From contig LSRY02000040.1 in the NCBI GenBank assembly GCA_001643675.2, forward strand, positions 310,001 to 374,000: a stretch of DNA of 64,000 bases. Reading direction: 5' to 3'. How positions within the stretch are numbered: position 1 is the stretch's first letter; every line of letters begins with the position of its first letter. The notes under the pieces are model-generated. The model was not told the DNA's origin. It made no database searches and worked only from the letters and a program-made list of their open reading frames with translations. This document shows, piece after piece, positions 1,503-32,596 of this stretch. This DNA comes from Monocercomonoides exilis PA203. Its lineage: Eukaryota > Protista > Preaxostyla. The position numbers and the translations under genes were made by a program.

Positions 1503-1602
1503 AACTCAGTTTCGACTAATTCATATCAAATAAGACCGACTAAATGCAAATTGATTGAGTCAAATCAAAATTATGCATTCAATTCAAAAAATCTCATTTT
1601 CC
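1503..1602 (+). repeat. ~100-bp cassette, probable right end of an older Harbinger-like element
   Basis: Near-identical to ~24205-24306 (and mirror ~31747-31848); diverged copy at ~9610-9700. Always directly precedes an AGAA(C/A)TT left end and contains the AGTCAAATCAA motif of the element TIR. Confidence 0.65.
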
Positions 1603-1605
1603 AAA

Positions 1606-3959
1606 AGAACTTGATTGATTTGACTTCGTCAAATGGCATTAGATCGGTCAACATCCAATAAGATCGATCTAATGCCATTGAGACTCAGTCAAATTGGATG
1701 TGACTCAGTCACATCCGATCATTTTCATTCTGGTTGTGATGATCACTTAAAAAATAAATGTCTTATTTGTGTCATTTCACTTGCTTGTTTCTATTTTTTT
1801 TTCAAAATGTCTCAATCAACTTTTTTAGACATATTTGAGAGAGTGGAAAAGAGAAATGCTATCACTGCACCAGTGCACATCACTCCTTCACCTGCAAAAA
1901 AATCTCTCATCGAATCTGCTTGCAAATATATGAAAGTTGATAAAACTCATGCATTTTTCCGACTCACCGGATTTGCTCGTTTTGAATTTGATTTGCTGTA
2001 TCAGTTTTAAAGTGAAGAAATCCCTCTTCGTCGGGGAAAAGAAAAAACAATTGAAAAATTTGAGGATCAACTCTTTCTTCTTTTGAATTTTTTGCATCTT
2101 GGATCAACATCCTTCACTCATTTTCTCGTTTCTTCTTTTTATGAAACACAAAATTCAACAATAAAATTACTTCACAGCATTGTTCAAAATATAAAAGTCA
2201 ATCTGATCGATTTGTTCATCACATTTCGACCAGACAGATTAGATGATATGAGAGATGTGGGTGTTGTGGTTGACTGCACAGTTCTTCCAATCAACAGACC
2301 AGCTGGAAGCTTGCAGTTTGGAACAAAATTCTACAGCGGGAAACATCATATCTACTGCGTGAAGGCTGAAGTTGGTGTAAACCCGCGCACCGGAACGGCC
2401 AGCACTGTCAGTTCCATTCATACAGGCTCAACACATGACTTTTCAATTTTCAAGGAGCATTTCCCACAATTCAAGGCGCAGCTTGGTGGCTCAAAGGTGC
2501 TGGCGGACTCGGCATACATCGGGGCGAGGGCTGATTTGGATGCATATATTACGAAACCTGTCGGAACTCCTCAGCTGGCATCGCGGCGAGTCATTGTTGA
2601 GCGTTATTTTGGTCGTTTGAAGACTCTCTTCGCTGTCTTTCGCCACAATTGGCCATTTCAGGTGGAAAAGATTGCTGACTACTTCATTGTTACATGCGCA
2701 CTGACAAACTTCCACATCCTTCACAACCCATTAACTGGACTTGACTGCGAAGCCAATCAGAGGTTCATCAACGAACTTTACCTAATTACAACAAGAAAAA
2801 CAGAAGCAAGGAGACTTGTCAACGATAGATATCGGGCTAAACTTAAGAATAGACTCAACCCAGAGGTCTCTCCAACTTCTAGAATAACAGTTCTGCTTGC
2901 AGAAGAAGCTGGCGTGAATTTTTATTTTTTACCCATATTATTCTTTATAACGTTTAATTTCTTCTTTTTCATATTTCAATAACCATAACTATCTTTTTCA
3001 GGTGATTCTGGTGACCAACAAACCCAAAATTGTGAAAAAGAAGAGAAAGAGGAAGAAAAAGAAGAAAAAGAAGAAAAGGAAAAGAAAAAGAAAATTTTTA
3101 TTGAAGAAAAAGAAAAAAGAAATGAAATTATTATGTTGAATAGTGAAAATGATGAAATAGAAGATGAAAGAAATTATATTGTAGGCACATGGTTCATTCC
3201 AAACCAATGGAAAATTCTTCGCCTTCTTCAACAATCTTCTTCTTCAACTTTTCCTTCTTCTTCATGTTCATCATCTGATGAAAAAAGAAAAAGAGTAAGT
3301 GAATCATCTTTTCAATCTCTTTTAGCAAATAAAAAATGAGTTTTTTCTTATTTTTTAATATAAGCATTCACCTTCATCACATTTTTTGATAATCACAATA
3401 CACTTTTTCTGTTTCAGAAAAAATTTGTTTTTGTTATTATTAAACATACTTAAAAATATAAAAAATTTTGATTGAAAATTGTTTTAAACTCTTTGAAACT
3501 TAAAATAAAAAATGAAAAAATGAAATGAATGAAAATGAACATTTAAACAAACACGAATATGCAAATATTTAAAAATATATTCAAATAAGCTATTACTGTT
3601 GTTTTTTTTGTGAAAAAGTTGGTAATCCTTACAAAAAATACGTAAAAACTTGTTATAAATGCATAGTATTAAAAATAGATAAAAGTGAAAAAACTGATCA
3701 AAAATGGCTTTTATAATATCTAATAAACACACAAACCAAATTCTGAAACACAACTAAAAACATTGGTAAAGAAATTAACAAAACAAAAAAAGTTTAGATC
3801 ACAACACTCAAAACAAATTTAATTGATAATTCCGAAGCTGAAAACATGTGAGATTGAGGGAAATTCGATTAAAAATAGATAAATTCGATAAACCAGACAA
3901 AAATTGATTTGACTGAGTTATATTTTCGCGACTCAGTCAAATCAATCAAGTTTGATTTC
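1606..3959 (+). mobile_element. PIF/Harbinger-IS5-like DNA transposon, copy H1 (~2.35 kb, single ORF)
   Basis: TIRs AGAACTTGATTGATTTGACT (1606) / AGTCAAATCAATCAAGTT (~3952); body near-identical to 25271-27612 and 28423-30767; encodes a DDE_Tnp_4-type transposase. Confidence 0.9.
1807..3339 (+). pseudogene. DDE_Tnp_4 (Harbinger/IS5-like) transposase, two exons (1807-2911, 3002-3339), one in-frame TAA at 2008-2010
   Basis: MSQSTF start; FFRLTGF..FDLL N-terminal motif; VVDCT, FYSGKHH, GSTHD, LADSAYIG, RVIVERYFGRLK. Frame is continuous through the TAA. Removing 2912-3001 joins to the acidic/Ser-rich tail ending LANKK-TGA. Confidence 0.85.
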
Positions 3960-3960
3960 A

Positions 3961-5646
3961 TAGTCGGGGTGGAAACCCGAGCCAGGGAGGAAACCCGAGC
4001 CAGTGATCTTTTCATGAATAAAAATATTTTTTCCATTTTTTTGTTAAAATTTTTGAAATTGAGTTTTTATTTATGCAAAATAATAAAAAAATACAATATT
4101 TCTTCATTGCACATGTTAAAAATATTCAATTGAATTGAAAAAAAAGAAAGATAATGAAAAATAAAGAAGAATAACAAAGATCAAAAGTTGTTTATTTAAA
4201 AAGGTTTTCAAGCCTATCGGAAGCTCTGTAAACTGCTCCATAAGATGCACCTTCAGGAGCTTTTTTTGGCTCAATTTCGGATTGAGCCCATTCTGGAGGT
4301 GAATCTGGAAGGTGTCTGAGAATATCTTCTTTTTCATTGGCCACATTCCGCTCACTCTCCATGATGCGATAATCGTCTCTGGATAGCTTGCTGCAGCTAT
4401 TCCATTTTAAAGAACTTTCACAAAGGCTTCTCTTCTCGCAGATGCTGAAGAAACCATGCCACAATCCTTTGATTTTGAAAAAACGCGCTTCATATTGGCA
4501 AAAATGAATTGATCGTTTGATTGGAGAATGTGGGATGTATGAGATGGTAATTTTATCAAATCAATTAAGTTATATCTGCATTCTTTCTTTATATCTTCCT
4601 GAAAATGGCCAACTCCTCCGTCCATAATGAGAGCTGCATGTCAAAAATTTTCTCCAATCTGATTCTTTTTTTTCAATATTTCCGGCAGAAAATATTTTCT
4701 GAATAATTCCAGAAATAGTTTTGAAGTGAGATGTCCATTTGCAGTTGGTATAAAAACCTCAAGTGAGGTTGAAGCAAGTCTGTATTCGTGGGGAATTGTT
4801 TTTAATGGGATCAGAACTGGAGTAATATATCTGCAGCCATCCGCACTTGTCATAAATACGATGGTTGTAGAAGATGGAAGAGATGGCTCAGCAATAAAAA
4901 ATGAAGGAGTGGAAGAAGATGATGCTACCAAATCTTGCTCCGAGTCGGAAAAGGATGTTGATGTTTCGTCGATGTTAAAAATCAATTGTGGTAGAGGTTT
5001 TATTTGCTGTATATACAAATCATAACAATTAAAAAATGGATTCAAAACCATTTTGCATGTGTGCGCCACACGTCCAATTGGTAAAGCTTTAGGCTTGACC
5101 AATTCAATTTTTGGATGTCTGGTTAAAAATCTATCGATCCAATGTTTGTCCACCTTTTTTGTATCTTCATCATCTTTTCGCTTCTTCAATAACAACTCGT
5201 TGGCCTAAATAAAAAAAATCGTTAAATAAAAATATAAAAACAATGCATTGAAACCATTTGCTCTATGAATTTCTTTGTTGGATTTTTTCCACTGCGCGCC
5301 TCTTCCAATATTTGCTGTTCAAAATCATCCTCTTCTGAAATGGTAAAAAGAGTCGGTCTTCCGCACTTTCTTATTTTTCTACCTTCGTTTCTCGCTTTGA
5401 TAGCTCTTTGCAATGATCCACGTGAAATTAATTTGCACTCCTCAATTTCTTGCTCAGAAAAGTTTAAAATGTCATAGGCATATATTACTTTGATAGTATC
5501 GTCTTTCATTGAACGCATTTCACTTGTAGCCAACAGCCTGGCCAAAGAGGGTTTAACCTTCTCCATTATGATCAAAAAACTTTATTTGAAAAATTTGATC
5601 AAAGTGGCTCGGGTTTCCTCCCTAGCTCGGGTTTCCACCCAAACTA
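3961..5646 (-). mobile_element. pogo/Tigger-type DNA transposon P1 (~1.69 kb), frameshifted DDE_1 transposase at 4192-5566 with one intron
   Basis: ~42-bp TIRs TAGTCGGGGTGGAAACCCGAGCCAGGGAGGAAACCCGAGCCA; motifs FNIDETS, MDGGVGH, LPSHTSHILQSNDQ; intron ~5207-5254 between EQM and ANE. Confidence 0.9.
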
Positions 5647-5843
5647 GAACTAAAACTATTTTATTTAGTCATTTGGTGTTAGATAAATCCAATACCATTT
5701 AAATGAACATAAAACAAAAATAATAAATAAAAAACTGTTTTTACAAAGTCAAAACTATTAAATTAAATCATGGGTACATTTTTGATCGTTTGAAAAAGAT
5801 GAATAAAGTGTTGCATTGTTTTTGACATTTTGAAAAGAGTGAA

Positions 5844-7404
5844 ATGATACATCAAAACAATTTAATGGATGTTCTGAAATGTGTGGAAAAAAGGAATGTC
5901 ATTCCGACACATATTCATGCAACAAAAGAAGAAAAAAGCACAACAATCATCGAAATAGCTTGTTCGAAATTTTTGGATAAGTCAACTGGGTTTTTCAGAT
6001 TGACTGGATTTTGTAGTTCTGTTTTCGACTTGTTTCTTTGTCTTCTTTCATCCTCAGCATAACCACATCGTGGAAGGGCAAAATCAATCGAATCTTTGGA
6101 TGAACAATTATTCTTGCTGCTCACTTTTCTTCATCACGGTTCAACAACACTCACACTCATATTATCATCACCTTTCTATGAAACTCAAAACGCTATTGTC
6201 CGACTTCTTCACAGTATTGTTTCTCATTTCAGAGCTCCATTGGCAGATTTGTTTTTGATATTTTATCCTGAAGTTTTGGAGGAGTCGAAAGATGTGAGAA
6301 TTGTTGTTGATTGTTCTGTCATTCCGACAAACAGACCCGGAGGAAAGCTGGAATATTGTAAAAAATATTACACAGGAATATGCCACATCTGCAACGTCAA
6401 AGTGGAGGTGGGAGTGAACCACAAGGTGGGGACAGCAAGCACAATCAGCTCCATCTTCACTGGTTTGACAAATGATTTCACTATTTTCAACGAGCACTAC
6501 ACGACATTCGAGCACAGGCTGGGAGGAACAAAGATTTTAGCTGATTCTGCTTTCATTGGAGCAAAACCAGAGCTTGAAGCCATCATCACAAAGCCAGTTG
6601 GAACTCCAGAATTGGCCACACATCGCGTTATCGTGGAAAGATTTTTCGGAAGACTCAAAACACTCTTCATTATCTTCCATCATCCATGGATTTATAAAAT
6701 GGAGTGTGTTGCAGTCTATTTTTCAGTGGCTTGCTGCCTTATAAACTTTCATATCTTGCACAATCCACTCACAAAGAAAGATGCAGAAACAAATTCATTG
6801 TTTTTGGAGGAGTTATATTCGAATTACTTGAGAAAAGTTGATGCAAAGAAGGCGGCCAATGCTTGATATTTTTCTAAAATGAAAAATAAACTTAATCCAG
6901 TAAATACCCTGACACCCACAATAACTACAATTTTGGGAGAAATTGGAGGCTTATCTTTCACTTTCATACCATTATTTTTTATTTTCTTTTTCTATTTTTT
7001 AATTTTTATAATCATTTTTCCGTATTTTTTTATTTTAGATGCTTCTGATGATGATCTGAGGGCGTACGAAGCAGAAATAGCAAAAGAAAGAAGAGAAAGA
7101 GTGAACTGCGAAGTTTTAGAACAAAGAAGTTAGCAAAGGGAACAGGTTTTGGAAAAAGAAAGAAAAGATTTTGATGAAAATCAAAATTGTGATAATTCAC
7201 AAGCTTGGCACCTTCCGCAACAATACAAATCGATAAGTATTTTTTTCTCCATCTTCAACTCAACCTTTTCCTTCATTTTCACAAACACAACCTTCTTCTT
7301 CCTTTTCATCATCATCCTTATCTACTGCTTCTTCTTCCTCTTCTGTAGATTCAAAACAAAATAAACCCCCATCTGTTCTCCAATCGTTGCTGAATAAAAA
7401 GTGA
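5844..7404 (+). pseudogene. DDE_Tnp_4 transposase of H2, several stops, intron 6949-7038
   Basis: Collinear homology to H1: VEKRN, FFRLTGF, VVDCS, LADSAFIG, RVIVERFFGRLK, C-terminal QSLLNKK-TGA. Confidence 0.85.
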
Positions 7405-8069
7405 TAGTCATTGAAATTTTATTTGAATTCTTTTTTCTTCCATCTCTCTTTTTAATAATCTCTATTAATTAATATTTCCAACTCTGAATTTATTTTTTTT
7501 AATGAAAAACAAAAATTGTGTTTATTTATAAAATTTCTATGTATTTGTTAATTTTCAATACAAAACATACACCAAAAATTATTCAAAATGAGAATTTTAG
7601 CAATCAAATTAATAATTTTTCAAACGAAACAAAAATTTTTGAATTCAAAATGAAAAATAAATTTAAATTAAAAAATTTCAATATTTTTCAAAATTTTTAT
7701 TCAATTATTGAACATTTGACAAAATTATCAGTTCTCATTTTTTATTTCCATAAACTTTCTTCAATATATTATAAAAAAAATATATTTGATGAATAGTTCG
7801 AATATTTGTAGTGAATAATTTTTCTGATGTGATAAATCTCTGTTGATGTTAAATGGAATATTTTCTTAAAGAAGTTATGAAATCAAAAATTTTATTATTA
7901 GAACGTTTTTGGATTAAAAAAGTGTTGAATACGTTATTAAAAAATTGTTTTCGAAAGAAAAATAAAGTGAAGAAAAGAAAACAATAAAAAGAAAAACTTC
8001 ACTGTTCTGAATAAAAAATATAAACAAATTGAAGTTTAATCAACTCCAAGATCAAAGTTTTTTTCTTGT

Positions 8070-9495
8070 TCAGAAAGTTGTTTTTGATATAATATATGAA
8101 TCAGTGATCTCTGTTATTGTAGAAGTCTGCTCCTCTGTGTCTTGTGAAAAAAATGTTTTTGCTTGTTGCTGGTTGAATAGTGTTGAAGCTGGAACAATAT
8201 CTGAAGATGAAGAAGCTGATTCATAAGGAACAATTTGGTTTTCGCTATTGTCTTCAGTGATTTCTTCTTCTTTCAATTCATTATAATCAGAAATCAATCT
8301 GTTGTATGAATCGCACAAGTCTTTTCATTGTTGAGCTAATGGAATGAAATGTAATTGTTCATATTTTATACACCTATCAACATCTTTTCTTTTTGTTATT
8401 TCCACCGAATCTGCAAGAAACATGACAAGCTGAGCGCTTGTGTGAATGTTTGCAGATATCTTCAATCGTGACTTCAAAATTCCGAACACATATTCAATTG
8501 GATTCAGCTCGCAACTGTTTGGAGCAGTGTGAAGTGTTTGATAATTCTTTGACGCAATGAGATTTCTAACATTTTCTGTTTTGTGCAATCCATCGTTGTC
8601 CAAAACGAATACACATGATTCAGATTTGAACGGTTTCAATTTTGCCATCAATGAAAGAGAAATTCTTGAAAGATATCTTCATTAAAGCTCCCTTCAACAA
8701 ATGTTTCATGCGGAATTCCAAGTAATTCGTTAAAAGCTGTTATAGCAGCAACAGTTTCAACTTTTGATTTTTCTCTGAACTGGATACATCTTGTTCCGAC
8801 TGGAGATCTTCTTTCTGTTAGAAATTCTAATGTTTTAAATCCTGTCTCATCAATGAAAATCATAATTCTTCCTTCAGCTCAGTTTTGCATGTTCTTTCTA
8901 ACATATTCATTTCGTTGTTCTATTGTGGCAGGACAAGCTCTTGCATTTTCATTTTTGCTCAACATTTTCATTGTAAACTTTGGACATCCATGTTTAATCA
9001 TTTTGTTTGATTTTGTATGTCTGGTTATTGTCGAAATTGAAGGCATTGACTTACAAAGATCTGACACAGATTCTGATAATTCTCGTGCAGTCATTGTAGG
9101 GTTTTCAAGGATCATCTTTGCCATTTTCTTTGATGCGTCTGATGTTATTCTTCATAAACATGCCCTCCTCGTGGTTTAGGTGGTTGAATTTCATTAACAA
9201 TTCTTGTATCGATGGCAATACTTCCGTTTTATTTTTTCGATAATTCCAACAACTTCTTTCCTTCCTTTTTGTCTTGCTTCAATATATTCCTCATATTTTC
9301 TGTTAATTGTACGTAAGGCTTTTGAATCTTTTTTGGATTAGGTGGGTTTGTTGTTGGACGTCCTCTTTTACTCTTTTTATTTTGGAACTCAATTTTAGGA
9401 AGCATCACATCAACATTATGATTCGAATCAGAAGAAGAGATGTTGAAAATAAACAATAAATACTTTAAACAATCAAAAAAAGAATTCACATACAT
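8070..9495 (-). pseudogene. Tc1/mariner-IS630 (DDE_3) transposase, frameshifted
   Basis: ORF fragments with IFIDETGF, FVLDNDGLHK, PNSCELNPIEYVFGILK and an HTH-like ILENPTMTAREL. TIRs not located. Confidence 0.85.
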
Positions 9496-9703
9496 GTTGA
9501 ATTTCGAAGATCTCCCAACAAGGAAGAGAGTTTGAAAAATTAAGTCAACATCTTGATCGTTATTGACAAATAATTGTTTTCAAAAAAGATCAAAAAATTA
9601 TCTATTCAAATCAGATTTGATTAAGTCAAATCAAATAAGATTGACTAAATGCAAATTTTTTGAGTCAAATCAAAAATATGCACTCAATTTGAAAAGTTCA
9701 ACT

Positions 9704-12500
9704 AGAAATTCATTGATGTTTTTTAATTTATTTTCCTTTACTTAATCTCGAAACAAAGAGTTGGAGAAAATTAGAAAAAGTTCGAATCATATAAATTTGT
9801 TTGAGACACATCCGATAGTTGAATAAATGGGAACTCGATCCTAAGAAATTATATTCAAAAAATGGGAAATATTGATCCATTAACAACGTTTGTTTTTCGC
9901 TAATGTCTCAAACATCATTTCTCGAAGTCTTGAGTTCCGTCGAAAAGCGAAATGCAATTCCAGAACGAGTTGAAGTTGAAAAAAAAGGAGATAAAAGAAT
10001 CTGTTTTTGATTTAACAAAAAAGTTGAAATGTGAACTAATAACATCATATTTCCGATTAACAGGCTTTGCTCAGCTTGAATCCGATCTCCTTGAGAAGCT
10101 TCTAAGCGATGAGGTTTCTCACCACAGAGGAAAGGAAAGAGCAGTTAATGAATTCAGAGATCAGTTATTCCTTTTGATGAATTTTTCGCATGATGGTTCA
10201 AAAACATTAACTCATTTTTCAGCATCTTTTTTCTATCAAACAAATAATTCAACAGTCAAGTTGCTTCATTCAATTGTTTCCGATGTCATAGAGCCACTTC
10301 CCCATTCATTTTTGACATTCAGAGAGAATCGCTTAATCGATATGAATGATGTTGCAATTGTTCAGGATTGCACTGTTTTACCAATAAACAGGCCAGGAAG
10401 TGGTCCGATGAATATCAAAAAATTTCATAATGGTAAACATCACATCTATTGCGAAAAAGTCGAAATTGGCTTGAACCCTGATGTGGAACAGCCTGCACAA
10501 TAAGTCCAATCAAATAGGGTCCACTCATTGTTTTATAGTTTTAAAGGAGCATTATCTGCACTTCAAGGATCAACTTAAAGGTTCGAAAATTCTGGCTGAC
10601 TCTGCTTATATGTGGGCAAAGCCAGAGCTTGATGCAATTATGACGAAGTCTGAATGTACTCAAGAGTTGGCATCGAAAATAGTTAAAGGAGAACGGTTTT
10701 TTGGAAGTCTCAAGACGCTATTTCATTTACGGAGGCAGTGGACTTTTGAGGCTGAAATGATAACAGATTATTTTATTGTTGCCTGTTGTTAAACGAATGA
10801 CCATATTTTGAAAAATCCTTTGACTACTCACGATCTGGATGCAAATCAACGTTTTTAGATGCTCTGACAGTTGAGAATTTTAAAAGACAGAAGGCAAAGA
10901 ACATTGCCAATGAACAATACAGAGTTAAAATGAAAAACAGACTCAATCTGAGCCAAGTTCCTTCACCAAGATTAACAATTCTGCCTATTCAGGCAGATGG
11001 CGTGTGTTTAATTTTTAAACACATATTGTTCTTTTCCATGTTATTTATACTTTTTTTTATATTAATATGCCATAACTTTTCTTTTTTTGATGATTCAGAA
11101 GAATCTCAAAACCCAAAAGATATTCTGATCGAAGAAAATATTACGAAAGAAATGAAAAAGAAAGTTTCATTTGAAGAAAAAGATGATAGAGACAAAAAAA
11201 TAGAAAAAGAGAGTGGTATGACAAATAAAGAAAGAAAGGATACTTGAAATTAGCACTCCTGGTGTTTCCATAACCAGTGGATATCAACTCAATTATTTCG
11301 TGCATCATCCAGTTCCTCTGTCTCTTTATCAACAATTTTTTCAAATTCCTTTTGTCAACAACAAACACAAACACAGTTACAAGCTCTTCTCAAAGAAAAG
11401 CATTTAATATTTATTGTTTTTTCTTTTTCACATCATTAATTTTTAACTTTTTCAAAAATAAAACAGAAAGCTTTTGATAATGAGTTCTTGAATTTTTTTT
11501 TGACTTTATTTAACAAAAAATATAAAAGAAAACATTGAAATGCTATCAAATAACTGATAAACAAACAAAAATTGAAAAATTCATTAAGAAGAATATTTTT
11601 TTCAACAAATGTTTATTTTCAATTGATGAATTTATCAATTTCATAAATATAAACATGTTCATTCAAATTTATATTGTTTATTGTTGAATTTAGAGTCAGT
11701 ATATCTGGTTTAAATGTTTTATTCAAAAGAAGAATCAATATTGAACATAGGGGCGATTCTTTTTGAAAAGTTGCAAATGTTTAATTTTCAAATAAATCAA
11801 AAATTTCATATTTTGCTAAGCATTTTGTTCACAAATATCAAACTTCACTTAAATGGAATCTATATCTTGATAATGCTATTTCTAACATTCTTGAGGAGAT
11901 ATGAAAGTGGAAACAGAAATGTGAGCAAAACATGAAAATTTTGATTAAATTTGAAAATTTAACATTTGTGACATTTAAAAAAAAAAATCACACATATAAG
12001 GAATATTTATTGAAATCATAACTATTTTCGCTGTACAAAATTTCAAAGATTATCAATTTTTCGAAAAAAATATTTTATTCTAAAAAGAAAAAGAATGATA
12101 ATTGTTTTTAAAAACAAATGTTAGCACCGAATCAATGTGAGAAATGTTTTCAATTAATCTTTTCTCTTTTCTAAGTTCATTGGAAAATATTCATGACTAA
12201 TTTTTGAACAGAAATATTTGTATGAAAAAATGTGATAACATAAATAATCACAAAGGTTTTTTAAAAAAAGCAAATATGAAAGTTTCAAAAGTGGTATATA
12301 AACATTCACGTTGTCACACGTTTTAAATTTTCCAAGTGCAAGTGAAATATCTGGTAAACAAAATAAGAAAGATCATATCATAAAATAATAAAAATCCCCA
12401 ACTGGAAACAAAAAAATTAAAGAAAAGTTCAAAAAGTCAAAAAAAAATTCAAAAAGTTCTAACTTTATCAATGTGATTCAGTCGAATTTTTGTGATTCGA
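9704..12500 (+). mobile_element. Diverged Harbinger-like element H3 with transposase pseudogene (~9903-11400)
   Basis: Left end AGAAATTCATTGATG vs H1 AGAACTTGATTGATT; MSQTSFLEVL..VEKRNAI, YFRLTGF, VQDCT, LADSAY, ERFFGSLK. Right end approximate (GTGATTCAGTCGAAT ~12474). Confidence 0.75.
11751..11993. mobile_element. ~240-bp GGG...CCC fold-back MITE (degenerate)
   Basis: Long imperfect TIRs; homologous to 32597-32836 and 33929-34167; flanks ATAG/ATAT. Confidence 0.75.
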
Positions 12501-12529
12501 AAAAATGAATGATGTTCTCGTTCTTCCAT

Positions 12530-14173
12530 TAGTCGGGGAGGAAACCCGATCCATTTTTGATCAAAAACTTTGATTAATGTTTTTGATCAAAACAATGGAA
12601 AAAAAACCTTCTCTTGTCAGAATTAAAGCATCGAGTGATATGCGTTCAATTGGAGATGAATTTGTCAAGGCCTTGTATGCCTATGATATTTTACAATACT
12701 CCGGTCGTGAAATCGAGGAAAGCGGGTTAATTTTGAGAGGATGTTTTGTGAGAGCCTTGAAAGCAAGAAAAGAAGGGAGAGATTAAAGAAAAAATGGGAG
12801 ACCAACATTGTTTACAAAAGAAGAAGAAGATGAGTTTGAACAGAGGATTTTGGAGGACATGAGGATCGGAATTTATCACACGAAACGAAATATTATGCAA
12901 ATGGAGTGAAAATATGTGTTTTCATCATTTTTTTAACTTATTTTGTATTTCAGGCAAATGAATTGCTGAGCAAAAAAAGAAGCAAAGGAGAAGAAATCAA
13001 AACTGAGGATAAGCATTGGGTTGATGGTTTTTTGTTTGGACAAAAAAAACCTGCAAATGCCGAAACCGTTTCCCATTGGAAGGGATGCATTAATATTCAA
13101 AGCAGTATAAATACCGCTTTTCGTTTTCAACGTAAAATATTTCTTCAAAGTGAAACGAATACATCAATTGATGTTCAATATTGAAGAAACATCAACAATT
13201 TTTTCATCTTTATTAGTAGAATAGGTATCTTCATTATCTTTTGTTTCTTCATCAATCACTCCAGAATCATCTCTCCCAAAATCCACATCAATCATTTAAA
13301 TGATTAGCACTGATAAGTGTTGATGCCCTGCATAAAATTTCATGCCCTTCAAAACAATTCCATTTGAATATCTTCTTGCAACAACCTCAACTGAAGTTTT
13401 TATCCCAACCACGTCAGACTATTTAACATCATCATTATTTGCTGAATTGTTTGAAAAAATATTTTTTTACCATAAATAAACAAAAAACCGTTCACTGTCG
13501 GAAAGCAATATGATCATGCCATACTTGTTAAAAACGGAGTTACAGGTCATTTAAGCTACAAAATGAAAAAAGTTGCAGAGACAAATTAATGGATTTTTCG
13601 AACTTCATTCTCACAACTCTCATTTTCTTCCTCCCAACTTCCAATTTGTGTTTGTGAGTTTAAAATGGAATTTTAGCAAATCAACGTTAACCGGGAAGTC
13701 CACCACAGCTGCGGAGAGAAAAGAATCATTTGCTCAAACTTTTTAAAATGGACGATCAGCAGCAAGTTGCACATCAACGATTATTGCTTTATAAAGGATT
13801 TGTGGTTTATTTTCAATAAACAAAAATGAAGTTTTGAATCGTTTGCCTGATACCCCTCCTCAATGGGCTGCCTCACAAATAAATCCTGAAAGAGCGCCAG
13901 AAGGTGCTTCATATGGAGCAGTCTATTATTCATCTGACGACGGTCATCAACTTTAAGCTTAAATTAATACATTTTCTCAATTTCTGTTAATTATCCAGTT
14001 ATTTGAATTTCTGTTAAAGTTAATCGTGTTTATTATTTTATACAGTTTTTTTTACTGTGAACAGTGCATTTTTCATATATCGGACATGTTTTTTTCATAG
14101 AAAAGAACTTTAATTTTTATTAAATAATCATAAATGTATTTTTGATCATTGGGTTGTGTTTCCTCCACTGCTA
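12530..14173 (+). mobile_element. pogo-type element P3, heavily decayed transposase
   Basis: TAGTCGGGGAGGAAACCCG left end, degenerate right end ..TTCCTCCACTGCTA; MEKKPSL.., FNIEETS, APEGASYGAVY homologous to P1. Confidence 0.8.
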
Positions 14174-23687: not shown

Positions 23688-23933
23688 TATGTCCAAATTT
23701 TTTTGAAAACTTTCTTTTGTTGTATTTTCAAATAAATCGAAAATTTTATATTTCGATCAAATTTCTGTTTCCACTCACGAAACTTCATAAGATTGGTAAC
23801 AGAACCTTAACAATGTTATTATTTCCATTCTAGGAAAGTTTCGTAAGTGTGAACAGAAATTTGATCGAAATAGGAGATTTTCATTTTTTTTTATAACTAA
23901 ACAAAAGTAACTTTTCAAAAAAATTTTGACACA
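23688..23933. mobile_element. ~245-bp fold-back MITE
   Basis: Imperfect self-complementarity along its length (e.g. TTTCGATCAAATTTCTGTT / AACAGAAATTTGATCGAAA); related copy at ~56715-56960. Confidence 0.7.
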
Positions 23934-24309
23934 TCATTCTTATTAATAATAAATTTATTTATTTATTTTTATTTATTTATTTGTTTTTTATTTATTTTTA
24001 TTAATTTTTTATTTATTTATTTTTATTAATTTTTTATTTATTTTTATTTATTTTTATTTTTTTTTTTATTTTTCATTCATTATTTATTTATTTTTTATTT
24101 ATTTGTTTTCTTGTGAAGGACGAAACTTCAAGTGATTTATCAGGCATCCAGGCTGATAAATTTGTTTCATAATTTTTGATTTTTTGATCACCTTAAAAAT
24201 CTTCTCAATTCAGTTTTGACTAATTCATATCAAATAAGACCGACTAAATGCAAATTGATTGAGTCAAATCAAAATTATGCATTCAATTCAAAAAATCTCA
24301 TTTTCCAAA

Positions 24310-25267
24310 AGAACTTGATTGATTTGACTTCGTCAAATGGCATTAGATCGGTCAACATCCAATAAGATCGATCTAATGCCATTGAGACTCAGTCAAATTG
24401 GATGTGACTCAGTCACATCCGATCATTTTCATTCTGGTTGTGATGATCAGAAAATTTTCGTTATTTGTTTGTTTTGAAAATAGTTGGTTTTCATATAATT
24501 TCAATTCATTATGCTTTTATTTATTTGTTTTTCATGATATTTTGAAACAAAAAATAAAAGTTTTGAAAATTATTGAAGTTCTAACATAACCGCAAATTTC
24601 ATATTTGACATTATTTGATAATAATTGTTGATGATTTATTATAATGATTAGAGTAATTTTCATGTATCTATTCAATATTTAAAACTAGTTTCATTTGGAT
24701 TTTTCATTTCATTAATATTTTCTAAAAAAGAAAAAACACAAAAAGAATCAATAAAATCACATTTTCTTTTTATTTTTTATTCAATATGCAAAAATATTGA
24801 AAAATGATTGAATAATCAACACATATCAGTTTAGAAAACACAAAAATGTTTTTTTTTATAAATATTGAAATTCTTCAAAAAAATGAATATGAAAATGTTA
24901 ATTGTTCAAAACATAAACAAAGTTGGCTCGATTTCAACAGTGAAAGTTAACAGCTGAGTCACAATTACGAAATTTAAGAGTTTCAAAAACCCGAATCAAA
25001 ATGAGAAAACAACAAAAATATAATAAAAAACTTAAAATTCATAATTTGACAAACAACATTTCAAAAATCAACATCAACATGATTTCACAGGTCAAGATAT
25101 GAACAAAACAAAAATGTTCGATCACAATTTGTGATCATAAAAATCGCAATTTCGCCCTTGGTGAGATTGAATGAAATTCAATTAAAATTCGTAAAATTCG
25201 ATAAACCAGACAAAAATTGATTTGACTGAGTTATATTTTCGCGACTCAGTCAAATCAATCAAGTTCT
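24310..25267 (+). mobile_element. Non-autonomous Harbinger-like element A (~960 bp)
   Basis: Same left and right termini as H1/B, with an unrelated AT-rich non-coding interior. Confidence 0.88.
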
Positions 25268-25270
25268 AAT

Positions 25271-27612
25271 AGAACTTGATTGATTTAACTGCATCAAGTG
25301 GCATTAGATCGGTCAACATCCAATAAGATCGATCTAATGTCATTAAGATGCAGTCAAATTGGATGTGACTCAGTCACATCCGATGTTTTCAATTCTGGGT
25401 TTCATGATCACTAAAAAAAAATATCTTTAAGGGTCATTTCACTTGCTTGTTTCTATTTTTTTCAAAATGTCACAATCAACTTTTTGGACATTTTAGAGAG
25501 AGTGGAAAAGAGAAATGCTATCACTGCACCAGTGCACATCACTCCTTCACCTGCAAAAAAATCTCTCATCGAATCTGCTTGCAAATATATGAAAGTTGAT
25601 AAAACTCATGCATTTTTCCGACTCACCGGATTTGCTCGTTTTGAATTTGATTTGCTGTATCAGTTTTAAAGTGAAGAAATCCCTCTTCGTCGGGGAAAGA
25701 AAAAACAATTGAAAAATTTGAGGATCAACTCTTTCTTCTTTTGAATTTTTTGCATCTTGGATCAACATCCTTCACTCATTTTCTCGTTTCTTCTTTTTAT
25801 GAAACACAAAATTCAACAATAAAATTACTTCACAGCATTGTTCAAAATATAAAAGTCAATCTGATCGATTTGTTCATCACATTTCGACCAGACAGATTAG
25901 ATGATATGAGAGATGTGGGTGTTGTGGTTGACTGCACAGTTCTTCCAATCAACAGACCAGCTGGAAGCTTGCAGTTTGGAACAAAATTCTACAGCGGGAA
26001 ACATCATATCTACTGCGTGAAGGCTGAAGTTGGTGTAAACCCGCGCACCGGAACGGCCAGCACTGTCAGTTCCATTCATACCGGCTCAACACATGACTTT
26101 TCAATTTTCAAGGAGCATTTCCCACAATTCAAGGCGCAGCTTGGTGGCTCAAAGGTGCTGGCGGACTCGGCATACATCGGGGCGAGGGCTGATTTGGATG
26201 CATATATTACGAAACCTGTCGGAACTCCTCAGCTGGCATCGCGGCGAGTCATTGTTGAGCGTTATTTTGGTCGTTTGAAGACTCTCTTCGCTGTCTTTCG
26301 CCACAATTGGCCATTTCAGGTGGAAAGATTGCTGACTACTTCATTGTTACATGCGCACTGACAAACTTCCACATCCTTCACAACCCATTAACTGGACTTG
26401 ACTGCGAAGCCAATCAGAGGTTCATCAACGAACTTTACCTAATTACAACAAGAAAAACAGAAGCAAGGAGACTTGTCAACGATAGATATCGGGCTAAACT
26501 TAAGAATAGACTCAACCCAGAGGTCTCTCCAACTTCTAGAATAACAGTTCTGCTTGCAGAAGAAGCTGGCGTGAATTTTTATTTTTTACCCATATTATTC
26601 TTTATAACGTTTAATTTCTTCTTTTTCATATTTCAATAACCATAACTATCTTTTTCAGGTGATTCTGGTGACCAACAAACCCAAAATTGTGAAAAAGAAG
26701 AGAAAGAGGAAGAAAAAGAAGAAAAAGAAGAAAAGGAAAAGAAAAAGAAAATTTTTATTGAAGAAAAAGAAAAAAGAAATGAAATTATTATGTTGAATAG
26801 TGAAAATGATGAAATAGAAGATGAAAGAAATAATGTTGTTGGAACATGGTTCATTCCGAACCAATGGAAAAGTCTTCGCCTTCTTCAACAATCTTCTTCT
26901 TCAACTTTTCCTTCTTCTTCATGTTCAACATCTGATGAAAAAAAAAAAAGAGTTAGTGAATCGCCTTTACAATCTCTTTTAGCAAATAAAAAATGAGTTT
27001 TTTCTTATTTTTTTATATAAGCATTCACCTTCATCACATTTTTTGATAATCACAATACACTATTGATGTTTTAGATAATATTTGTTTTTGTTATTATTAA
27101 ACATACTTTAAAATATAAAAAATTTTGATTGAAAATTGTTTTAAACTCTTTGAAACTTAAAATAAAAATGAAAAAATGAAATGAATGAAAATGAACATTT
27201 AAACAAACACGAATATGCAAATATTTAAAAATATATTCAAATAAGCTATTACTGTTGTTTTTTTGTGAAAAGTTGGTAATCCTTACAAAAATACGTAAAA
27301 ACTTGTTATAAATGCATAGTATTAAAAATAGATAAAAGTGAAAAACTGATCAAAAATGGCTTTTATAATATCTAATAAACACACAAACCAAATTCTGAAA
27401 CACAACTAAAAACATTGGTAAAGAAATTAACAAAACAAAAAAAGTTTAGATCACAACACTCAAAACAAATTTAACTGATAATTCCGAAGCTGAAAACATG
27501 TGAGATTGAGGGAAATTCGATTAAAAATAGATAAATTCGATAAACCAGACAAAAATTGATTTGACTGAGTTATATTTTCGCGACTCAGTCAAATCAATCA
27601 AGTTCAAGTTCT
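25271..27612 (+). mobile_element. Harbinger-like element B with AAT target-site duplication; transposase 25467-26996
   Basis: AAT at 25268-25270 and 27613-27615; TIRs; ORF as in H1, including the TAA, plus three single-base homopolymer losses. Confidence 0.92.
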
Positions 27613-27617
27613 AATAT

Positions 27618-27691
27618 GGGCTAGTGGCTCAATTGGATAGAGCACCTGACTACGGATCAGGAGGTTGCAGGTTCAAGTCCTGCCTAGCTCG
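27618..27691 (+). tRNA. tRNA-Arg(ACG)
   Basis: Acceptor stem GGGCTAG/CTAGCTC, D arm, anticodon arm CCTGA-CTACGGA-TCAGG, T arm GCAGG-TTCAAGT-CCTGC, no encoded CCA. Confidence 0.96.
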
Positions 27692-27700
27692 TTTTTTTTT
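27692..27700 (+). terminator. RNA polymerase III oligo-T terminator
   Basis: T9 immediately after the tRNA discriminator base; mirrored at 28335-28343. Confidence 0.85.
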
Positions 27701-27819
27701 GAAAAAATAATTAACATTACAAATGTTTAATTAAAAATTTAAACTTTTATACATGTCAATAATTAAATTTTTGTATGCTAATTGATAATAATTGTTATAA
27801 ATTACCCCAACGTGATGTA

Positions 27820-28215
27820 CAGATATCGCATAAAATACCGGACATCGCACAAAATACCGGACAAGATCGATTTCACAATAACCACAAGAGGAATAATTCT
27901 GATAATTTTCCTCAAAATATATTTCATTAATACAAACTCATATGATATGCAAAACTTTCAGGACAGCTTCGCTTGAGCTCAGAAAAAATATATATCGAAA
28001 TATCGGAGAAATTGGATTTTGAGTTACTCCGAGATATTGAAAATAATTTTCTCTGAGCACAAATGAAGCTGCTTTGAAAGTATTGTATATCAAATGAGTT
28101 TGTATTAATGAAATATATTTTGAGGAAAATTATCAGAATTATTCCTCTTGTGGTTATTGTGAAATCGATCTTGTCCGGTATTTTGTGCGATGTCAGGTAT
28201 TTTATGCGATATCTG
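27820..28215. mobile_element. 396-bp fold-back MITE with TA|CAG...CTG|TA ends (Tc1/pogo type) at the palindrome axis
   Basis: TA-CAG terminus; two tandem 19-bp subterminal repeats ATCGCAYAAAATACCGGAC (27825-27862); inner 152 bp only ~70% self-complementary. Confidence 0.65.
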
Positions 28216-28343
28216 TACATCACGTTGGGGTAATTTATAACAATTATTATCAATTAGCATACAAAAATTTAATTATTGACATGTATAAAAGTTTAAATTT
28301 TTAATTAAACATTTGTAATGTTAATTATTTTTTCAAAAAAAAA

Positions 28344-28417
28344 CGAGCTAGGCAGGACTTGAACCTGCAACCTCCTGATCCGTAGTCAGGTGCTCTATCC
28401 AATTGAGCCACTAGCCC
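28344..28417 (-). tRNA. tRNA-Arg(ACG), mirror copy
   Basis: Exact reverse complement of 27618-27691. Confidence 0.95.
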
Positions 28418-28422
28418 ATATT

Positions 28423-30767
28423 AGAACTTGAACTTGATTGATTTGACTGAGTCGCGAAAATATAACTCAGTCAAATCAATTTTTGTCTGGTTTATCGAAT
28501 TTATCTATTTTTAATCGAATTTCCCTCAATCTCACATGTTTTCAGCTTCGGAATTATCAGTTAAATTTGTTTTGAGTGTTGTGATCTAAACTTTTTTTGT
28601 TTTGTTAATTTCTTTACCAATGTTTTTAGTTGTGTTTCAGAATTTGGTTTGTGTGTTTATTAGATATTATAAAAGCCATTTTTGATCAGTTTTTTCACTT
28701 TTATCTATTTTTAATACTATGCATTTATAACAAGTTTTTACGTATTTTTTGTAAGGATTACCAACTTTTTCACAAAAAAAACAACAGTAATAGCTTATTT
28801 GAATATATTTTTAAATATTTGCATATTCGTGTTTGTTTAAATGTTCATTTTCATTCATTTCATTTTTTCATTTTTTATTTTAAGTTTCAAAGAGTTTAAA
28901 ACAATTTTCAATCAAAATTTTTTATATTTTAAAGTATGTTTAATAATAACAAAAACAAATATTATCTAAAACATCAATAGTGTATTGTGATTATCAAAAA
29001 ATGTGATGAAGGTGAATGCTTATATAAAAAAATAAGAAAAAACTCATTTTTTATTTGCTAAAAGAGATTGTAAAGGCGATTCACTAACTCTTTTTTTTTT
29101 TTTCATCAGATGTTGAACATGAAGAAGAAGGAAAAGTTGAAGAAGAAGATTGTTGAAGAAGGCGAAGACTTTTCCATTGGTTCGGAATGAACCATGTTCC
29201 AACAACATTATTTCTTTCATCTTCTATTTCATCATTTTCACTATTCAACATAATAATTTCATTTCTTTTTTCTTTTTCTTCAATAAAAATTTTCTTTTTC
29301 TTTTTCTTTTCTTCTTATTCTTCTTCTTTCTCTTCTTTTTCACAATTTTGGGTTTGTTGGTCACCAGAATCACCTGAAAAAGATAGTTATGGTTATTGAA
29401 ATATGAAAAAGAAGAAATTAAACGTTATAAAGAATAATATGGGTAAAAAATAAAAATTCACGCCAGCTTCTTCTGCAAGCAGAACTGTTATTCTAGAAGT
29501 TGGAGAGACCTCTGGGTTGAGTCTATTCTTAAGTTTAGCCCGATATCTATCGTTGACAAGTCTCCTTGCTTCTGTTTTTCTTGTTGTAATTAGGTAAAGT
29601 TCGTTGATGAACCTCTGATTGGCTTCGCAGTCAAGTCCAGTTAATGGGTTGTGAAGGATGTGGAAGTTTGTCAGTGCGCATGTAACAATGAAGTAGTCAG
29701 CAATCTTTTCCACCTGAAATGGCCAATTGTGGCGAAAGACAGCGAAGAGAGTCTTCAAACGACCAAAATAACGCTCAACAATGACTCGCCGCGATGCCAG
29801 CTGAGGAGTTCCGACAGGTTTCGTAATATATGCATCCAAATCAGCCCTCGCCCCGATGTATGCCGAGTCCGCCAGCACCTTTGAGCCACCAAGCTGCGCC
29901 TTGAATTGTGGGAAATGCTCCTTGAAAATTGAAAAGTCATGTGTTGAGCCGGTATGAATGGAACTGACAGTGCTGGCCGTTCCGGTGCGCGGGTTTACAC
30001 CAACTTCAGCCTTCACGCAGTAGATATGATGTTTCCCGCTGTAGAATTTTGTTCCAAACTGCAAGCTTCCAGCTGGTCTGTTGATTGGAAGAACTGTGCA
30101 GTCAACCACAACACCCACATCTCTCATATCATCTAATCTGTCTGGTCGAAATGTGATGAACAAATCGATCAGATTGACTTTTATATTTTGAACAATGCTG
30201 TGAAGTAATTTTATTGTTGAATTTTGTGTTTCATAAAAAGAAGAAACGAGAAAATGAGTGAAGGATGTTGATCCAAGATGCAAAAAATTCAAAAGAAGAA
30301 AGAGTTGATCCTCAAATTTTTCAATTGTTTTTTCTTTTCCCCGACGAAGAGGGATTTCTTCACTTTAAAACTGATACAGCAAATCAAATTCAAAACGAGC
30401 AAATCCGGTGAGTCGGAAAAATGCATGAGTTTTATCAACTTTCATATATTTGCAAGCAGATTCGATGAGAGATTTTTTTGCAGGTGAAGGAGTGATGTGC
30501 ACTGGTGCAGTGATAGCATTTCTCTTTTCCACTCTCTCTAAAATGTCCAAAAAAGTTGATTGTGACATTTTGAAAAAAAAATAGAAACAAGCAAGTGAAA
30601 TGACCCTTAAAGATATTTTTTTTTTAGTGATCATGAAACCCAGAATTGAAAACATCGGATGTGACTGAGTCACATCCAATTTGACTGCATCTTAATGACA
30701 TTAGATCGATCTTATTGGATGTTGACCGATCTAATGCCACTTGATGCAGTCAAATCAATCAAGTTCT
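28423..30767 (-). mobile_element. Harbinger-like element B' (mirror of B); transposase 30568-29044 with the TAA at 30365-30367
   Basis: ATT duplications at 28420-28422 and 30768-30770; its 299-aa ORF is identical to that of H1. Confidence 0.92.
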
Positions 30768-30770
30768 ATT

Positions 30771-31743
30771 AGAACTTGAACTTGATTGATTTGACTGAGT
30801 CGCGAAAATATAACTCAGTCAAATCAATTTTTGTCTGGTTTATCGAATTTTACGAATTTTAATTGAATTTCATTCAATCTCACCAAGGGCGAAATTGCGA
30901 TTTTTTATGATCACAAATTGTGATCGAACATTTTTTTGTTTTGTTCATATCTTGACCTGTGAAATCATGTTGATGTTGATTTTTTGAAATGTTGTTTGTC
31001 AAATTATGAATTTTAAGTTTTTTATTATATTTTTGTTGTTTTCTCATTTTGATTCGGGTTTTTTGAAACTCTTAAATTTCGTAATTGTGACTCAGCTGTT
31101 AACTTTCACTGTTGAAATCGAGCCAACTTTGTTTATGTTTTGAACAATTAACATTTTCATATTCATTTTTTTTGAAGAATTTCAATATTTATAAAAAAAA
31201 ACATTTTTGTGTTTTCTAAACTGATATGTGTTGATTATTCAATCATTTTTCAATATTTTTGCATATTGAATAAAAAATAAAAAGAAAATGTGATTTTATT
31301 GATTCTTTTTTGTGTTTTTTCTTTTTTTAGAAAATATTAATGAAATGAAAAATCCAAATGAAACTAGTTTTAAATATTGAATAGATACATGAAAATTACT
31401 CTAATCATTATAATAAATCATCAACAATTATTATCAAATAATGTCAAATATGAAATTTGCGGTTATGTTAGAACTTCAATAATTTTTCAAAACTTTTATT
31501 TTTTGTTTCAAAATATCATGAAAAACAAATAAATAAAAGCATAATGAATTGAAATTATATGAAAACCAACTATTTTCAAAACAAACAAATAACGAAAATT
31601 TTCTGATCATCACAACCAGAATGAAAATGATCGGATGTGACTGAGTCACATCCAATTTGACTGAGTCTCAATGGCATTAGATCGATCTTATTGGATGTTG
31701 ACCGATCTAATGCCATTTGACGAAGTCAAATCAATCAAGTTCT
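30771..31743 (-). mobile_element. Non-autonomous element A' (mirror of A)
   Basis: Reverse complement of 24310-25267 with small indels. Confidence 0.88.
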
Positions 31744-32596
31744 TTTGGAAAATGAGATTTTTTGAATTGAATGCATAATTTTGATTTGACTCAATCAATT
31801 TGCATTTAGTCGGTCTTATTTGATATGAATTAGTCAAAACTGAATTGAGAAGATTTTTAAGGTGATCAAAAAATCAAAAATTATGAAACAAATTTATCAG
31901 CCTGGATGCCTGATAAATCACTTGAAGTTTCGTCCTTCACAAGAAAACAAATAAATAAAAAATAAATAAATAATGAATGAAAAATAAAAAAAAAAATAAA
32001 AATAAATAAAAATAAATAAAAATAAATAAAAATAAATAAATAAAAAATTAATAAAAATAAATAAAAACAAAAAAAATATAAGTTTTTACAAAGCACTTGC
32101 CTCATAAAAGAAAGGAAGATATATGTGCTTTGTTGTACGACCTCCTTTATTGGACAGACAAAAAAATCTATTTTTTGTGAATCAATGGTGGGGGTTGTTT
32201 CAAAATATTCATATCTTTACGCTAAACAAATGAGACAGATGATTTCGTTGTGTTTTCTTTATTGTTTGATAATTAAAATTTATTATGATTTTTGTCTGAC
32301 TCATTTTTCTCTTTTTGAAAGATCAGGGAAATAGATGGATGACATTTACATTTCAAGAATACAGACTTAATTATTTTTCCTCAATTTATCAGAATTGAAT
32401 TTCATTAACCCTAATTAACTTCCAACTGCAAGGGAAGCACACTCAACAAAAGATTGACAGACTCAATGGTTTGACAAAGTGAAAACATTTTATGATGAGT
32501 TCAGATTAACAACTGAACTCATTTTCAATCTTGATGAAGATTATTTAATTGTTTTAGTTGTTAGGTCAGTCAAATTGGAAAGCACTGAAGATACAT

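Follow-up and report, generated by a model that had tools for sequence, protein, structure and literature searches.

Probable layered insertion of Pangu-type cut-and-paste transposons before a tRNA-Arg gene of Monocercomonoides exilis and the possible homing of DNA transposons to RNA polymerase III start sites

Transfer RNA (tRNA) genes are the textbook case of safe landing sites for mobile elements in compact genomes. To our knowledge, all well-studied examples of tRNA gene targeting involve retrotransposons, and Dada elements are the only DNA transposons that have been tied to small RNA genes. The integration sites of the retroelements Ty3, TRE5-A, and DGLT-A lie at tRNA genes or immediately before them, so that the internal promoter is spared, and no tRNA-targeting DNA transposon is named in two reviews of these systems (PMC5911963, PMC5006619). 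Dada transposons are specialized on small RNA genes that occur in many copies, those for tRNA among them, and integrate at a specific sequence within the gene (Kojima and Jurka 2013, PMC3706591). A group not linked to tRNA genes in its description is Pangu of the PHIS (PIF/Harbinger-ISL2EU-Spy) superfamily, which is defined by a 3-bp 5'-ANT-3' target duplication and has inverted ends of 11–40 bp, usually starting with AG or GG, and two open reading frames in most families (Han et al. 2015, PMC4482050). Here, we analyze a window of 64,000 nt from the genome of Monocercomonoides exilis PA203 (Preaxostyla; GenBank assembly GCA_001643675.2, contig LSRY02000040.1, positions 310,001–374,000), in which DNA transposons are stacked head to tail directly before a tRNA-Arg(ACG) gene. 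With good probability, this structure is a layered stack of Pangu-type cut-and-paste elements that was built by successive insertions before the gene. Our literature search yielded no report that tRNA leaders are targeted by Harbinger, PHIS, or pogo elements, and in the paper on the M. exilis assembly, which assigns 46% of the sequence to mostly unclassified repeats, neither tRNA nor Harbinger is mentioned (PMC8767320).

The two intact-ended members of the stack belong to one transposon family, termed F1. Element A (window positions 24310–25267, plus strand) is a non-autonomous copy of 958 bp with 20-bp inverted ends (AGAACTTGATTGATTTGACT), and element B (25271–27612, plus strand) is an autonomous-type copy of 2342 bp with the same inverted end; they have the same orientation and ~100–150 bp of similar subterminal sequence at each end. 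A single AAT (25268–25270) serves as the right-hand target duplication of A and the left-hand one of B. A second AAT (27613–27615) follows B and is separated only by AT (27616–27617) from the tRNA-Arg(ACG) gene (27618–27691, plus strand), so that 5 nt lie between stack and gene. The tRNA gene is intact, is followed by a T run, and was recognized by ARAGORN and by the Rfam model RF00005 (67.5 bits). The sequence thus reads as originally predicted for this part of the locus, including the common orientation of A and B. The right end of B contains a 6-bp AAGTTC duplication that is absent from A but present in A', a mirror copy of A treated below.

Outside A lies a cassette (24205–24299, plus strand) that, according to its alignment with sister-family right ends at 9596–9709 and at locus L043, is the decayed and truncated right end of an older Pangu-type element of a sister family (Y1/family-2-like). 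The cassette is joined to an F1 left end four times on the contig under study. Between cassette and A, 10 nt of the original tRNA leader remain (24300–24309, plus strand), which consist of ATT (24300–24302), TTCC, and AAA (24307–24309). The ATT is the duplication of the old element and the AAA is the left duplication of A, which differs from its right counterpart AAT by one mismatch. Judged from these triplets, the older element entered at ATT, 4 nt further from the tRNA gene than A. The original prediction had placed an old right-end cassette next to A with only AAA, possibly a decayed AAT, in between. The decayed right end and the one-base difference between AAA and AAT bear this out in part, but the cassette stops at 24299, and ATT-TTCC separates A from the older end, whose own site was ATT. 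A T-rich low-complexity tract (TTTATTTATTT..., 23926–24110) is located just outside the stack.

By its duplication, ends, and type of transposase, the M. exilis family fits the Pangu group, a putative placement that is based on these features. F1 shares with Pangu the DDE_Tnp_4 transposase, the ANT duplication, and ends of 20 bp that start with AG; the ANT-type duplications that had been anticipated for relatives of PIF/Harbinger are the hallmark of this very group (PMC4482050). In contrast to most Pangu families with their two open reading frames, the M. exilis elements carry one two-exon gene within ~2.35 kb, and they show a fixed polarity and stacking, whereas tRNA is unmentioned in the description of Pangu. 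Canonical PIF/Harbinger elements have the transposase superfamily and a 3-bp duplication in common with the M. exilis elements. Their duplication, however, is the AT-rich TWA, and they possess a second gene of the Myb/SANT or MADF type, whereas ANT and no second gene are found here. Ty3, TRE5-A, and DGLT-A resemble the M. exilis elements in their position relative to tRNA genes, which in both cases would be harmless landing places within a compact genome, and TRE5-A also has a fixed polarity. These retroelements use an integrase or target-primed reverse transcription, whereas the M. exilis elements are DDE cut-and-paste transposons with inverted ends and 3-bp duplications. Dada elements are likewise DNA transposons on small RNA genes, but unlike them the M. 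exilis elements insert upstream with varying spacing, do not disrupt the gene, and share no target sequence beyond ANT.

The predicted product of element B matches DDE_Tnp_4 (Pfam E = 1.3e-17), as does that of the intact sister Y1 (E = 4.2e-21), which covers profile positions 1–158 of 158. According to open reading frames and Pfam, exon 1 of the B transposase (25484–26568, plus strand) contains the DDE_Tnp_4 domain. It is followed on the same strand by a phase 1 intron of 90 nt with GC..AG borders (26569–26658), behind which F1 and Y1 have kept the same reading frame in exon 2; the Y1 intron has 90 nt as well, but GT..AG borders. Exon 2 (26659–26996, plus strand) encodes an acidic, low-complexity, serine-rich tail that includes the block WFIPNQWKS. 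The counterpart of this tail in Y1 is found at L043:6758–7087, and Y1 exon 1 at L043:5558–6673, where splicing would precede an in-frame stop; the public Y1 gene model ends with exon 1 (372 aa). One sister-family transposase shows 100% identity to an annotated M. exilis protein. Both tails share an identity of only 27% overall, but the WFIPNQWKS block is identical. Because this block is invariant while the rest of the tail is poorly conserved, it is a candidate contact to the RNA polymerase III (Pol III) machinery. No second gene was recognized in B or Y1, as the other frames of at least 60 aa that were tested yielded no Pfam match.

The M. exilis genome (82.3 Mb in 101 contigs, here designated by C-numbers) was searched for further copies by means of hypothesis-driven patterns, and the survey of tRNA leaders covered 20 of 58 selected regions. 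The 19-nt end motif of F1 has 65–68 matches, most of which pair as copies of ~960 bp and a few as copies of ~2.35 kb. Right and left ends can be told apart by their subterminal sequence, and once obvious segmental duplicates had been removed, the independent ends numbered 29 on the right and 27 on the left. At eight of the right ends, a tRNA or tRNA-like gene of the same orientation follows at a distance of 6–11 nt. These genes comprise tRNA-Thr(TGT), Gly(TCC), Ala(TGC), Gln(TTG), Asp(GTC), Leu(TAA), and Arg(ACG), and a tRNA-like gene on contig C91 that is not accepted by the Rfam model but has kept its A and B boxes. In contrast, none of the 27 left ends precedes a tRNA gene (Fisher p = 0.005). 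Fewer than 0.01 tRNA-adjoining right ends would be expected by chance even if 3339 tRNA genes are allowed for (P ~ 1e-22). As regards the remaining right ends, ~17 of the 29 adjoin the end of another element, and at most four adjoin unrelated sequence. The original prediction had made its fate depend on this tabulation, and it holds up in that most right ends are next to a tRNA gene (8/29) or an element end (~17/29). Eight further right ends belong to arrays that terminate at a tRNA gene, which raises the number traceable to such a gene to 16 of 29.

A perfect 3-bp duplication flanks 14 of 21 F1 copies and is always of the ANT type (nine ACT, four AAT, one ATT; P ~ 5e-21). Two copies that are 0.9% apart have different duplications and flanks, which shows that F1 has moved fairly recently. 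The 19 complete short F1 copies collected, one of which is element A, diverge by 4–6% in their termini and by 10–35% in their interiors. This pattern points to long-lived non-autonomous lineages in which only the ends are maintained, and it follows that the distance of a copy to the consensus gives no insertion date. Likewise, terminal mismatches (8–17 of 230) give no resolution of insertion age along an array.

Evidence independent of family assignment was obtained with a pattern in which AAGTTCT-ANT is followed 50–80 nt downstream by a B-box consensus. This pattern has 19 matches in the genome as opposed to none in the reversed control, with an estimated ~2 matches expected by chance from base composition; one or two of the 19 look unlike tRNA. 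It adds tRNA-Pro(AGG), tRNA-Phe(GAA), and further tRNA-like genes to the list of targets, and patterns for the sister families W and V each gave one tRNA match, to Val(AAC) and Asp(GTC), respectively. Altogether, element ends were found 6–12 nt before the mature 5' end of 14 independent tRNA or tRNA-like genes. Seen from the genes, a transposon end is present in the 12 nt upstream of at least 10 of the 63 tRNA genes with the highest scores. The spacers between duplication and tRNA range from 2 to 8 nt, isoacceptors and flanks differ among targets, and no common target motif beyond ANT is visible in the flanks compared. It would thus appear that distance is measured from a bound complex rather than read from sequence; a single sequence motif as the target is ruled out by these differences. 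The idea that the tRNA gene was carried or captured by the element was also rejected, as more than 10 tRNA species with different spacers are involved.

Ordered arrays like the one under study recur elsewhere. Most F1 right ends without an adjoining gene face sister-family left ends, which begin with AGAAC, AGACC, or AGACG. In the notation of element, triplet, and leader, the array on C1 reads Z-ACT-F1-ACT-Y1-ACT-GACGAA-tRNA-Thr(AGT), where Y1 and Z are, like W and V, sister families. Its counterparts are F1-ACT-Z-ACT-ATATATAA-tRNA-Ala(AGC) on C13, F1-ACT-ATT-Y1-ATT-F1-ATT-TCATTA-tRNA-Leu on C25, and pogo-ACT-F1-ACT-W-ACT-AAACAA-tRNA-Val on C12. Three more tRNA-terminated arrays, on C22, C23, and C8, were traced by coordinates and matching triplets only. 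The repeated, orientation-specific insertion near a Pol III start that was proposed to build ordered arrays is thus mirrored on seven contigs. Wherever all junctions are readable, one triplet is used throughout, except that C25 and C8 make use of a second ANT site, which on C25 is slightly nearer the gene. Identical junction triplets are to be expected if each newcomer enters at the gene-side site and duplicates it; the arrays therefore seem to grow next to the gene. The stack in the window, which can be written as old end, ATT-TTCC-AA[A/T], A, AAT, B, AAT-AT, tRNA, fits this scheme. Such arrays would constitute a readable record of insertion order and could explain part of the unclassified repeats of this genome.

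The Pangu-type elements share their target zone with transposons of another superfamily. Elements of a co-resident family, G, whose ends read TA-GTCGGGG..., occur at many junctions and are pogo-like, with HTH_Tnp_Tc5 and DDE_1 domains (Pfam) and TA duplications. The domains were scored on a copy at 3962–5644, for which HTH_Tnp_Tc5 reached 19.7 bits, just below the Pfam cut-off of 22.2. Eight of 33 exact pogo-like ends have a tRNA or tRNA-like gene 2–8 nt further on, compared to none in the control; the targets are tRNA-Val(CAC), Val(AAC), Glu(TTC), Thr(CGT), Asp(GTC), and Gln(CTG), as well as two tRNA-like genes. The set includes short foldback copies of 690 bp (L063), and with regard to polarity only four ends matched the long pattern, most being symmetric short copies. 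The terminal GAC of the pogo-like elements together with the T of the TA duplication creates an ACT that is reused by later Pangu-type insertions, and this supply accounts for the predominance of ACT among the duplications. A third, unclassified element (P; 4–6.5 kb; ends AGCGTGTCAAATACCCGGG and AGCTAGTGTGTAAAAAATCCGGG; L059/L060 and L069/L070 on C21 and C26) has a Y1 right end on one side and, at a distance of 9 nt, the tRNA-Lys(CTT) gene on the other; elsewhere its ends adjoin F1 ends. No transposase was recognized in the portion of P that was seen.

Both superfamilies have repeatedly targeted sequences that possess good A and B boxes but are not scored as tRNA (C91:1075290, C17:742239, C8:100980, C42:663835, and C20:66068). 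They may represent tRNA pseudogenes, heads of short interspersed elements, or unusual Pol III genes. The unoccupied tRNA genes (L047–L066) have a common leader, in which a T-rich run is followed by CAA(C/G)AA directly before position +1. Plant tRNA genes possess CAA start motifs that resemble this leader.

The following course of events would account for these data. An incoming element would cut a 3-bp ANT 3–12 nt before the mature 5' end of the tRNA, in what is predicted to be the probable Pol III start zone, and would duplicate this triplet upon insertion. It would do so in a single polarity, with the right end and the transposase gene pointing toward the tRNA gene. The next arrival would reuse the triplet copy nearest to the gene, by which the oldest unit would be pushed outward and the same triplet be left at all junctions. 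At the locus studied, the old sister-family element would have entered first at ATT, followed by A at AAT and by B at the same AAT, and the finished stack would then have been copied into a palindrome. For target recognition, a tether might hold the transposition complex on the asymmetric initiation complex of Pol III (TFIIIB, TFIIIC, or Pol III itself), after which the nearest ANT would be cut. Anatomy, duplications, polarity, and the genome-wide association with tRNA genes are observed directly. By analogy to the Ty3 integrase and the TRE5-A protein (PMC5911963), we infer such a tether to the Pol III complex; it would be in line with the tRNA-like targets, which fail the tRNA model but retain A and B boxes. 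Taken further, a guild of unrelated cut-and-paste transposons, comprising at least Pangu-type PHIS and pogo-like elements, could home to the Pol III start via the initiation machinery, with the WFIPNQWKS tail of the Pangu-type transposase as tether, and would then be a convergent counterpart of Ty3 and TRE5-A in a gene-dense genome. For this comprehensive interpretation we regard the balance as even. If it is true, a DDE transposase in a deep-branching eukaryote has reached the same solution as the retroelements by different chemistry. A protein of ~475 aa, ends of 20 bp, and natural donors of ~960 bp would also make a tractable system for studying the recognition of the Pol III complex by a transposase.

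Several observations weigh against homing of active elements to Pol III starts. Exon 1 of B as assembled contains a stop codon (25667–25669) and shifts of frame around 25740 and 26323. Short-read contigs include variants with one-base indels at 25712, 25746, and 26323, and some of these breaks may therefore be copy-to-copy differences or long-read errors. Thirteen of the 29 F1 right ends were not traceable to a tRNA gene within the genome sequence covered. The window has a second head-to-tail array (1503–12530) with an autonomous F1 copy, a pogo-like transposon, members of two additional DDE_Tnp_4 families, and one more element that lies on the minus strand; no tRNA or tRNA-like gene was found at the end of this array. 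The junction with which it starts, between cassette and F1 left end, is the one also seen in the stack, for which reason the array is probably a displaced duplicate. In a small sample of other Pol III genes, consisting of a U6 gene and three dispersed copies of 5S, no element was found; these genes have a TATAAAAGG box near position −30. The nearest transposase relatives outside M. exilis are metagenome and Blattamonas proteins with identities of 28–37%. A tRNA-adjoining arrangement was not found at three Blattamonas loci that encode 28%-identical relatives: two are without a tRNA gene within 8 kb, and at the third a tRNA gene is located upstream of the gene and not past its end. On two metagenome contigs no tRNA gene lies beside the element. 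Finally, neither an empty allele nor a new insertion was seen in short-read contigs, which stem from four runs of one sample and are broken at repeats.

The main rival to a tether is a structural hot spot, meaning that bent or melted DNA at a busy Pol III start favors any DDE transposase without a dedicated contact. This explanation gains plausibility from the pogo-like ends, eight of 33 of which occupy the 2–8 nt before a tRNA gene versus none in the control, as two unrelated superfamilies with different duplications, ANT and TA, make use of the same few nucleotides; even the third, unclassified element has settled between a Y1 right end and tRNA-Lys. A mere distortion of the DNA would, however, hardly dictate the strict polarity of the Pangu-type elements, since the uniform orientation of all eight tRNA-adjoining F1 ends and of the head-to-tail arrays needs an asymmetric cue. 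Moreover, the U6 gene and the three 5S genes are likewise transcribed by Pol III but are empty, albeit in a small sample, and an invariant motif in the otherwise fast-changing transposase tail suggests a conserved partner. We thus consider the hot spot unlikely, although it has the best standing among the alternatives.

Distinctly less probable is homing to the ends of resident elements, with tRNA genes as only occasional neighbors. The ~17 of 29 right ends that adjoin another element, the reuse of one triplet at successive junctions, and the 1503–12530 array without a tRNA gene would all be expected in this case. A solo copy, however, sits in the native leader of tRNA-Thr(TGT) and borders on non-repeat sequence at the end away from the gene, half of the right ends trace to a tRNA gene, and the arrays that can be followed end at a tRNA gene and have inherited their triplet from the gene-side site. 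In addition, an element that has inserted 6–12 nt from a gene leaves its own duplication as almost the only reusable ANT. Random insertion followed by selection that spares only harmless sites such as tRNA leaders might be envisaged in a genome whose ten complete chromosomes are 62.6% coding sequence (PMC8767320). We deem this highly improbable, as non-coding and repeat DNA offers tens of megabases for insertion and selection cannot yield a 10-nt window and a single polarity at P < 1e-22. Least credible is an origin of the stack by duplication, recombination, or misassembly instead of transposition, for although the stack was copied as a palindrome, the contig has four junctions of the cassette with an F1 left end, and several units of tRNA gene plus element are duplicated elsewhere (C91, C23), the individual units are flanked by perfect ANT duplications, independent loci with more than 10 tRNA species are spread over at least ten contigs, and the palindrome arms are 21 substitutions apart and thus no read artifact.

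This palindrome extends over 8.1 kb (23969–32081) and consists of two inverted arms (23969–28008 and 28027–32081) that are 98.5% identical. The second arm contains a mirror tRNA-Arg(ACG) gene (28344–28417, minus strand; identified by ARAGORN, Rfam, and the palindrome alignment) and, according to the same alignment, the mirror copies B' (28423–30767, minus strand) and A' (30771–31743, minus strand). A' diverges from A by 0.1% and has the AAGTTC duplication at its right end. The second tRNA-Arg gene, B', and A' are duplicates and not an independent set of insertions; as the stack is one arm of the palindrome, its mirror copy adds no independent evidence for targeting. The center of the palindrome is occupied by a TA-flanked foldback repeat of ~400 bp with inverted arms (27818–28217) and very high copy number. 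Its read depth exceeds that of neighboring bins ~10- to 60-fold (run X1), and loose ends were found at 27816–27818 and 28217. Inverted duplicates of units consisting of an element and a tRNA gene also exist on C91, C23, C21, and C42, and in the 5S array on C15 a block on the plus strand precedes one on the minus strand. Inverted duplication primed by foldback may be common in the M. exilis genome.

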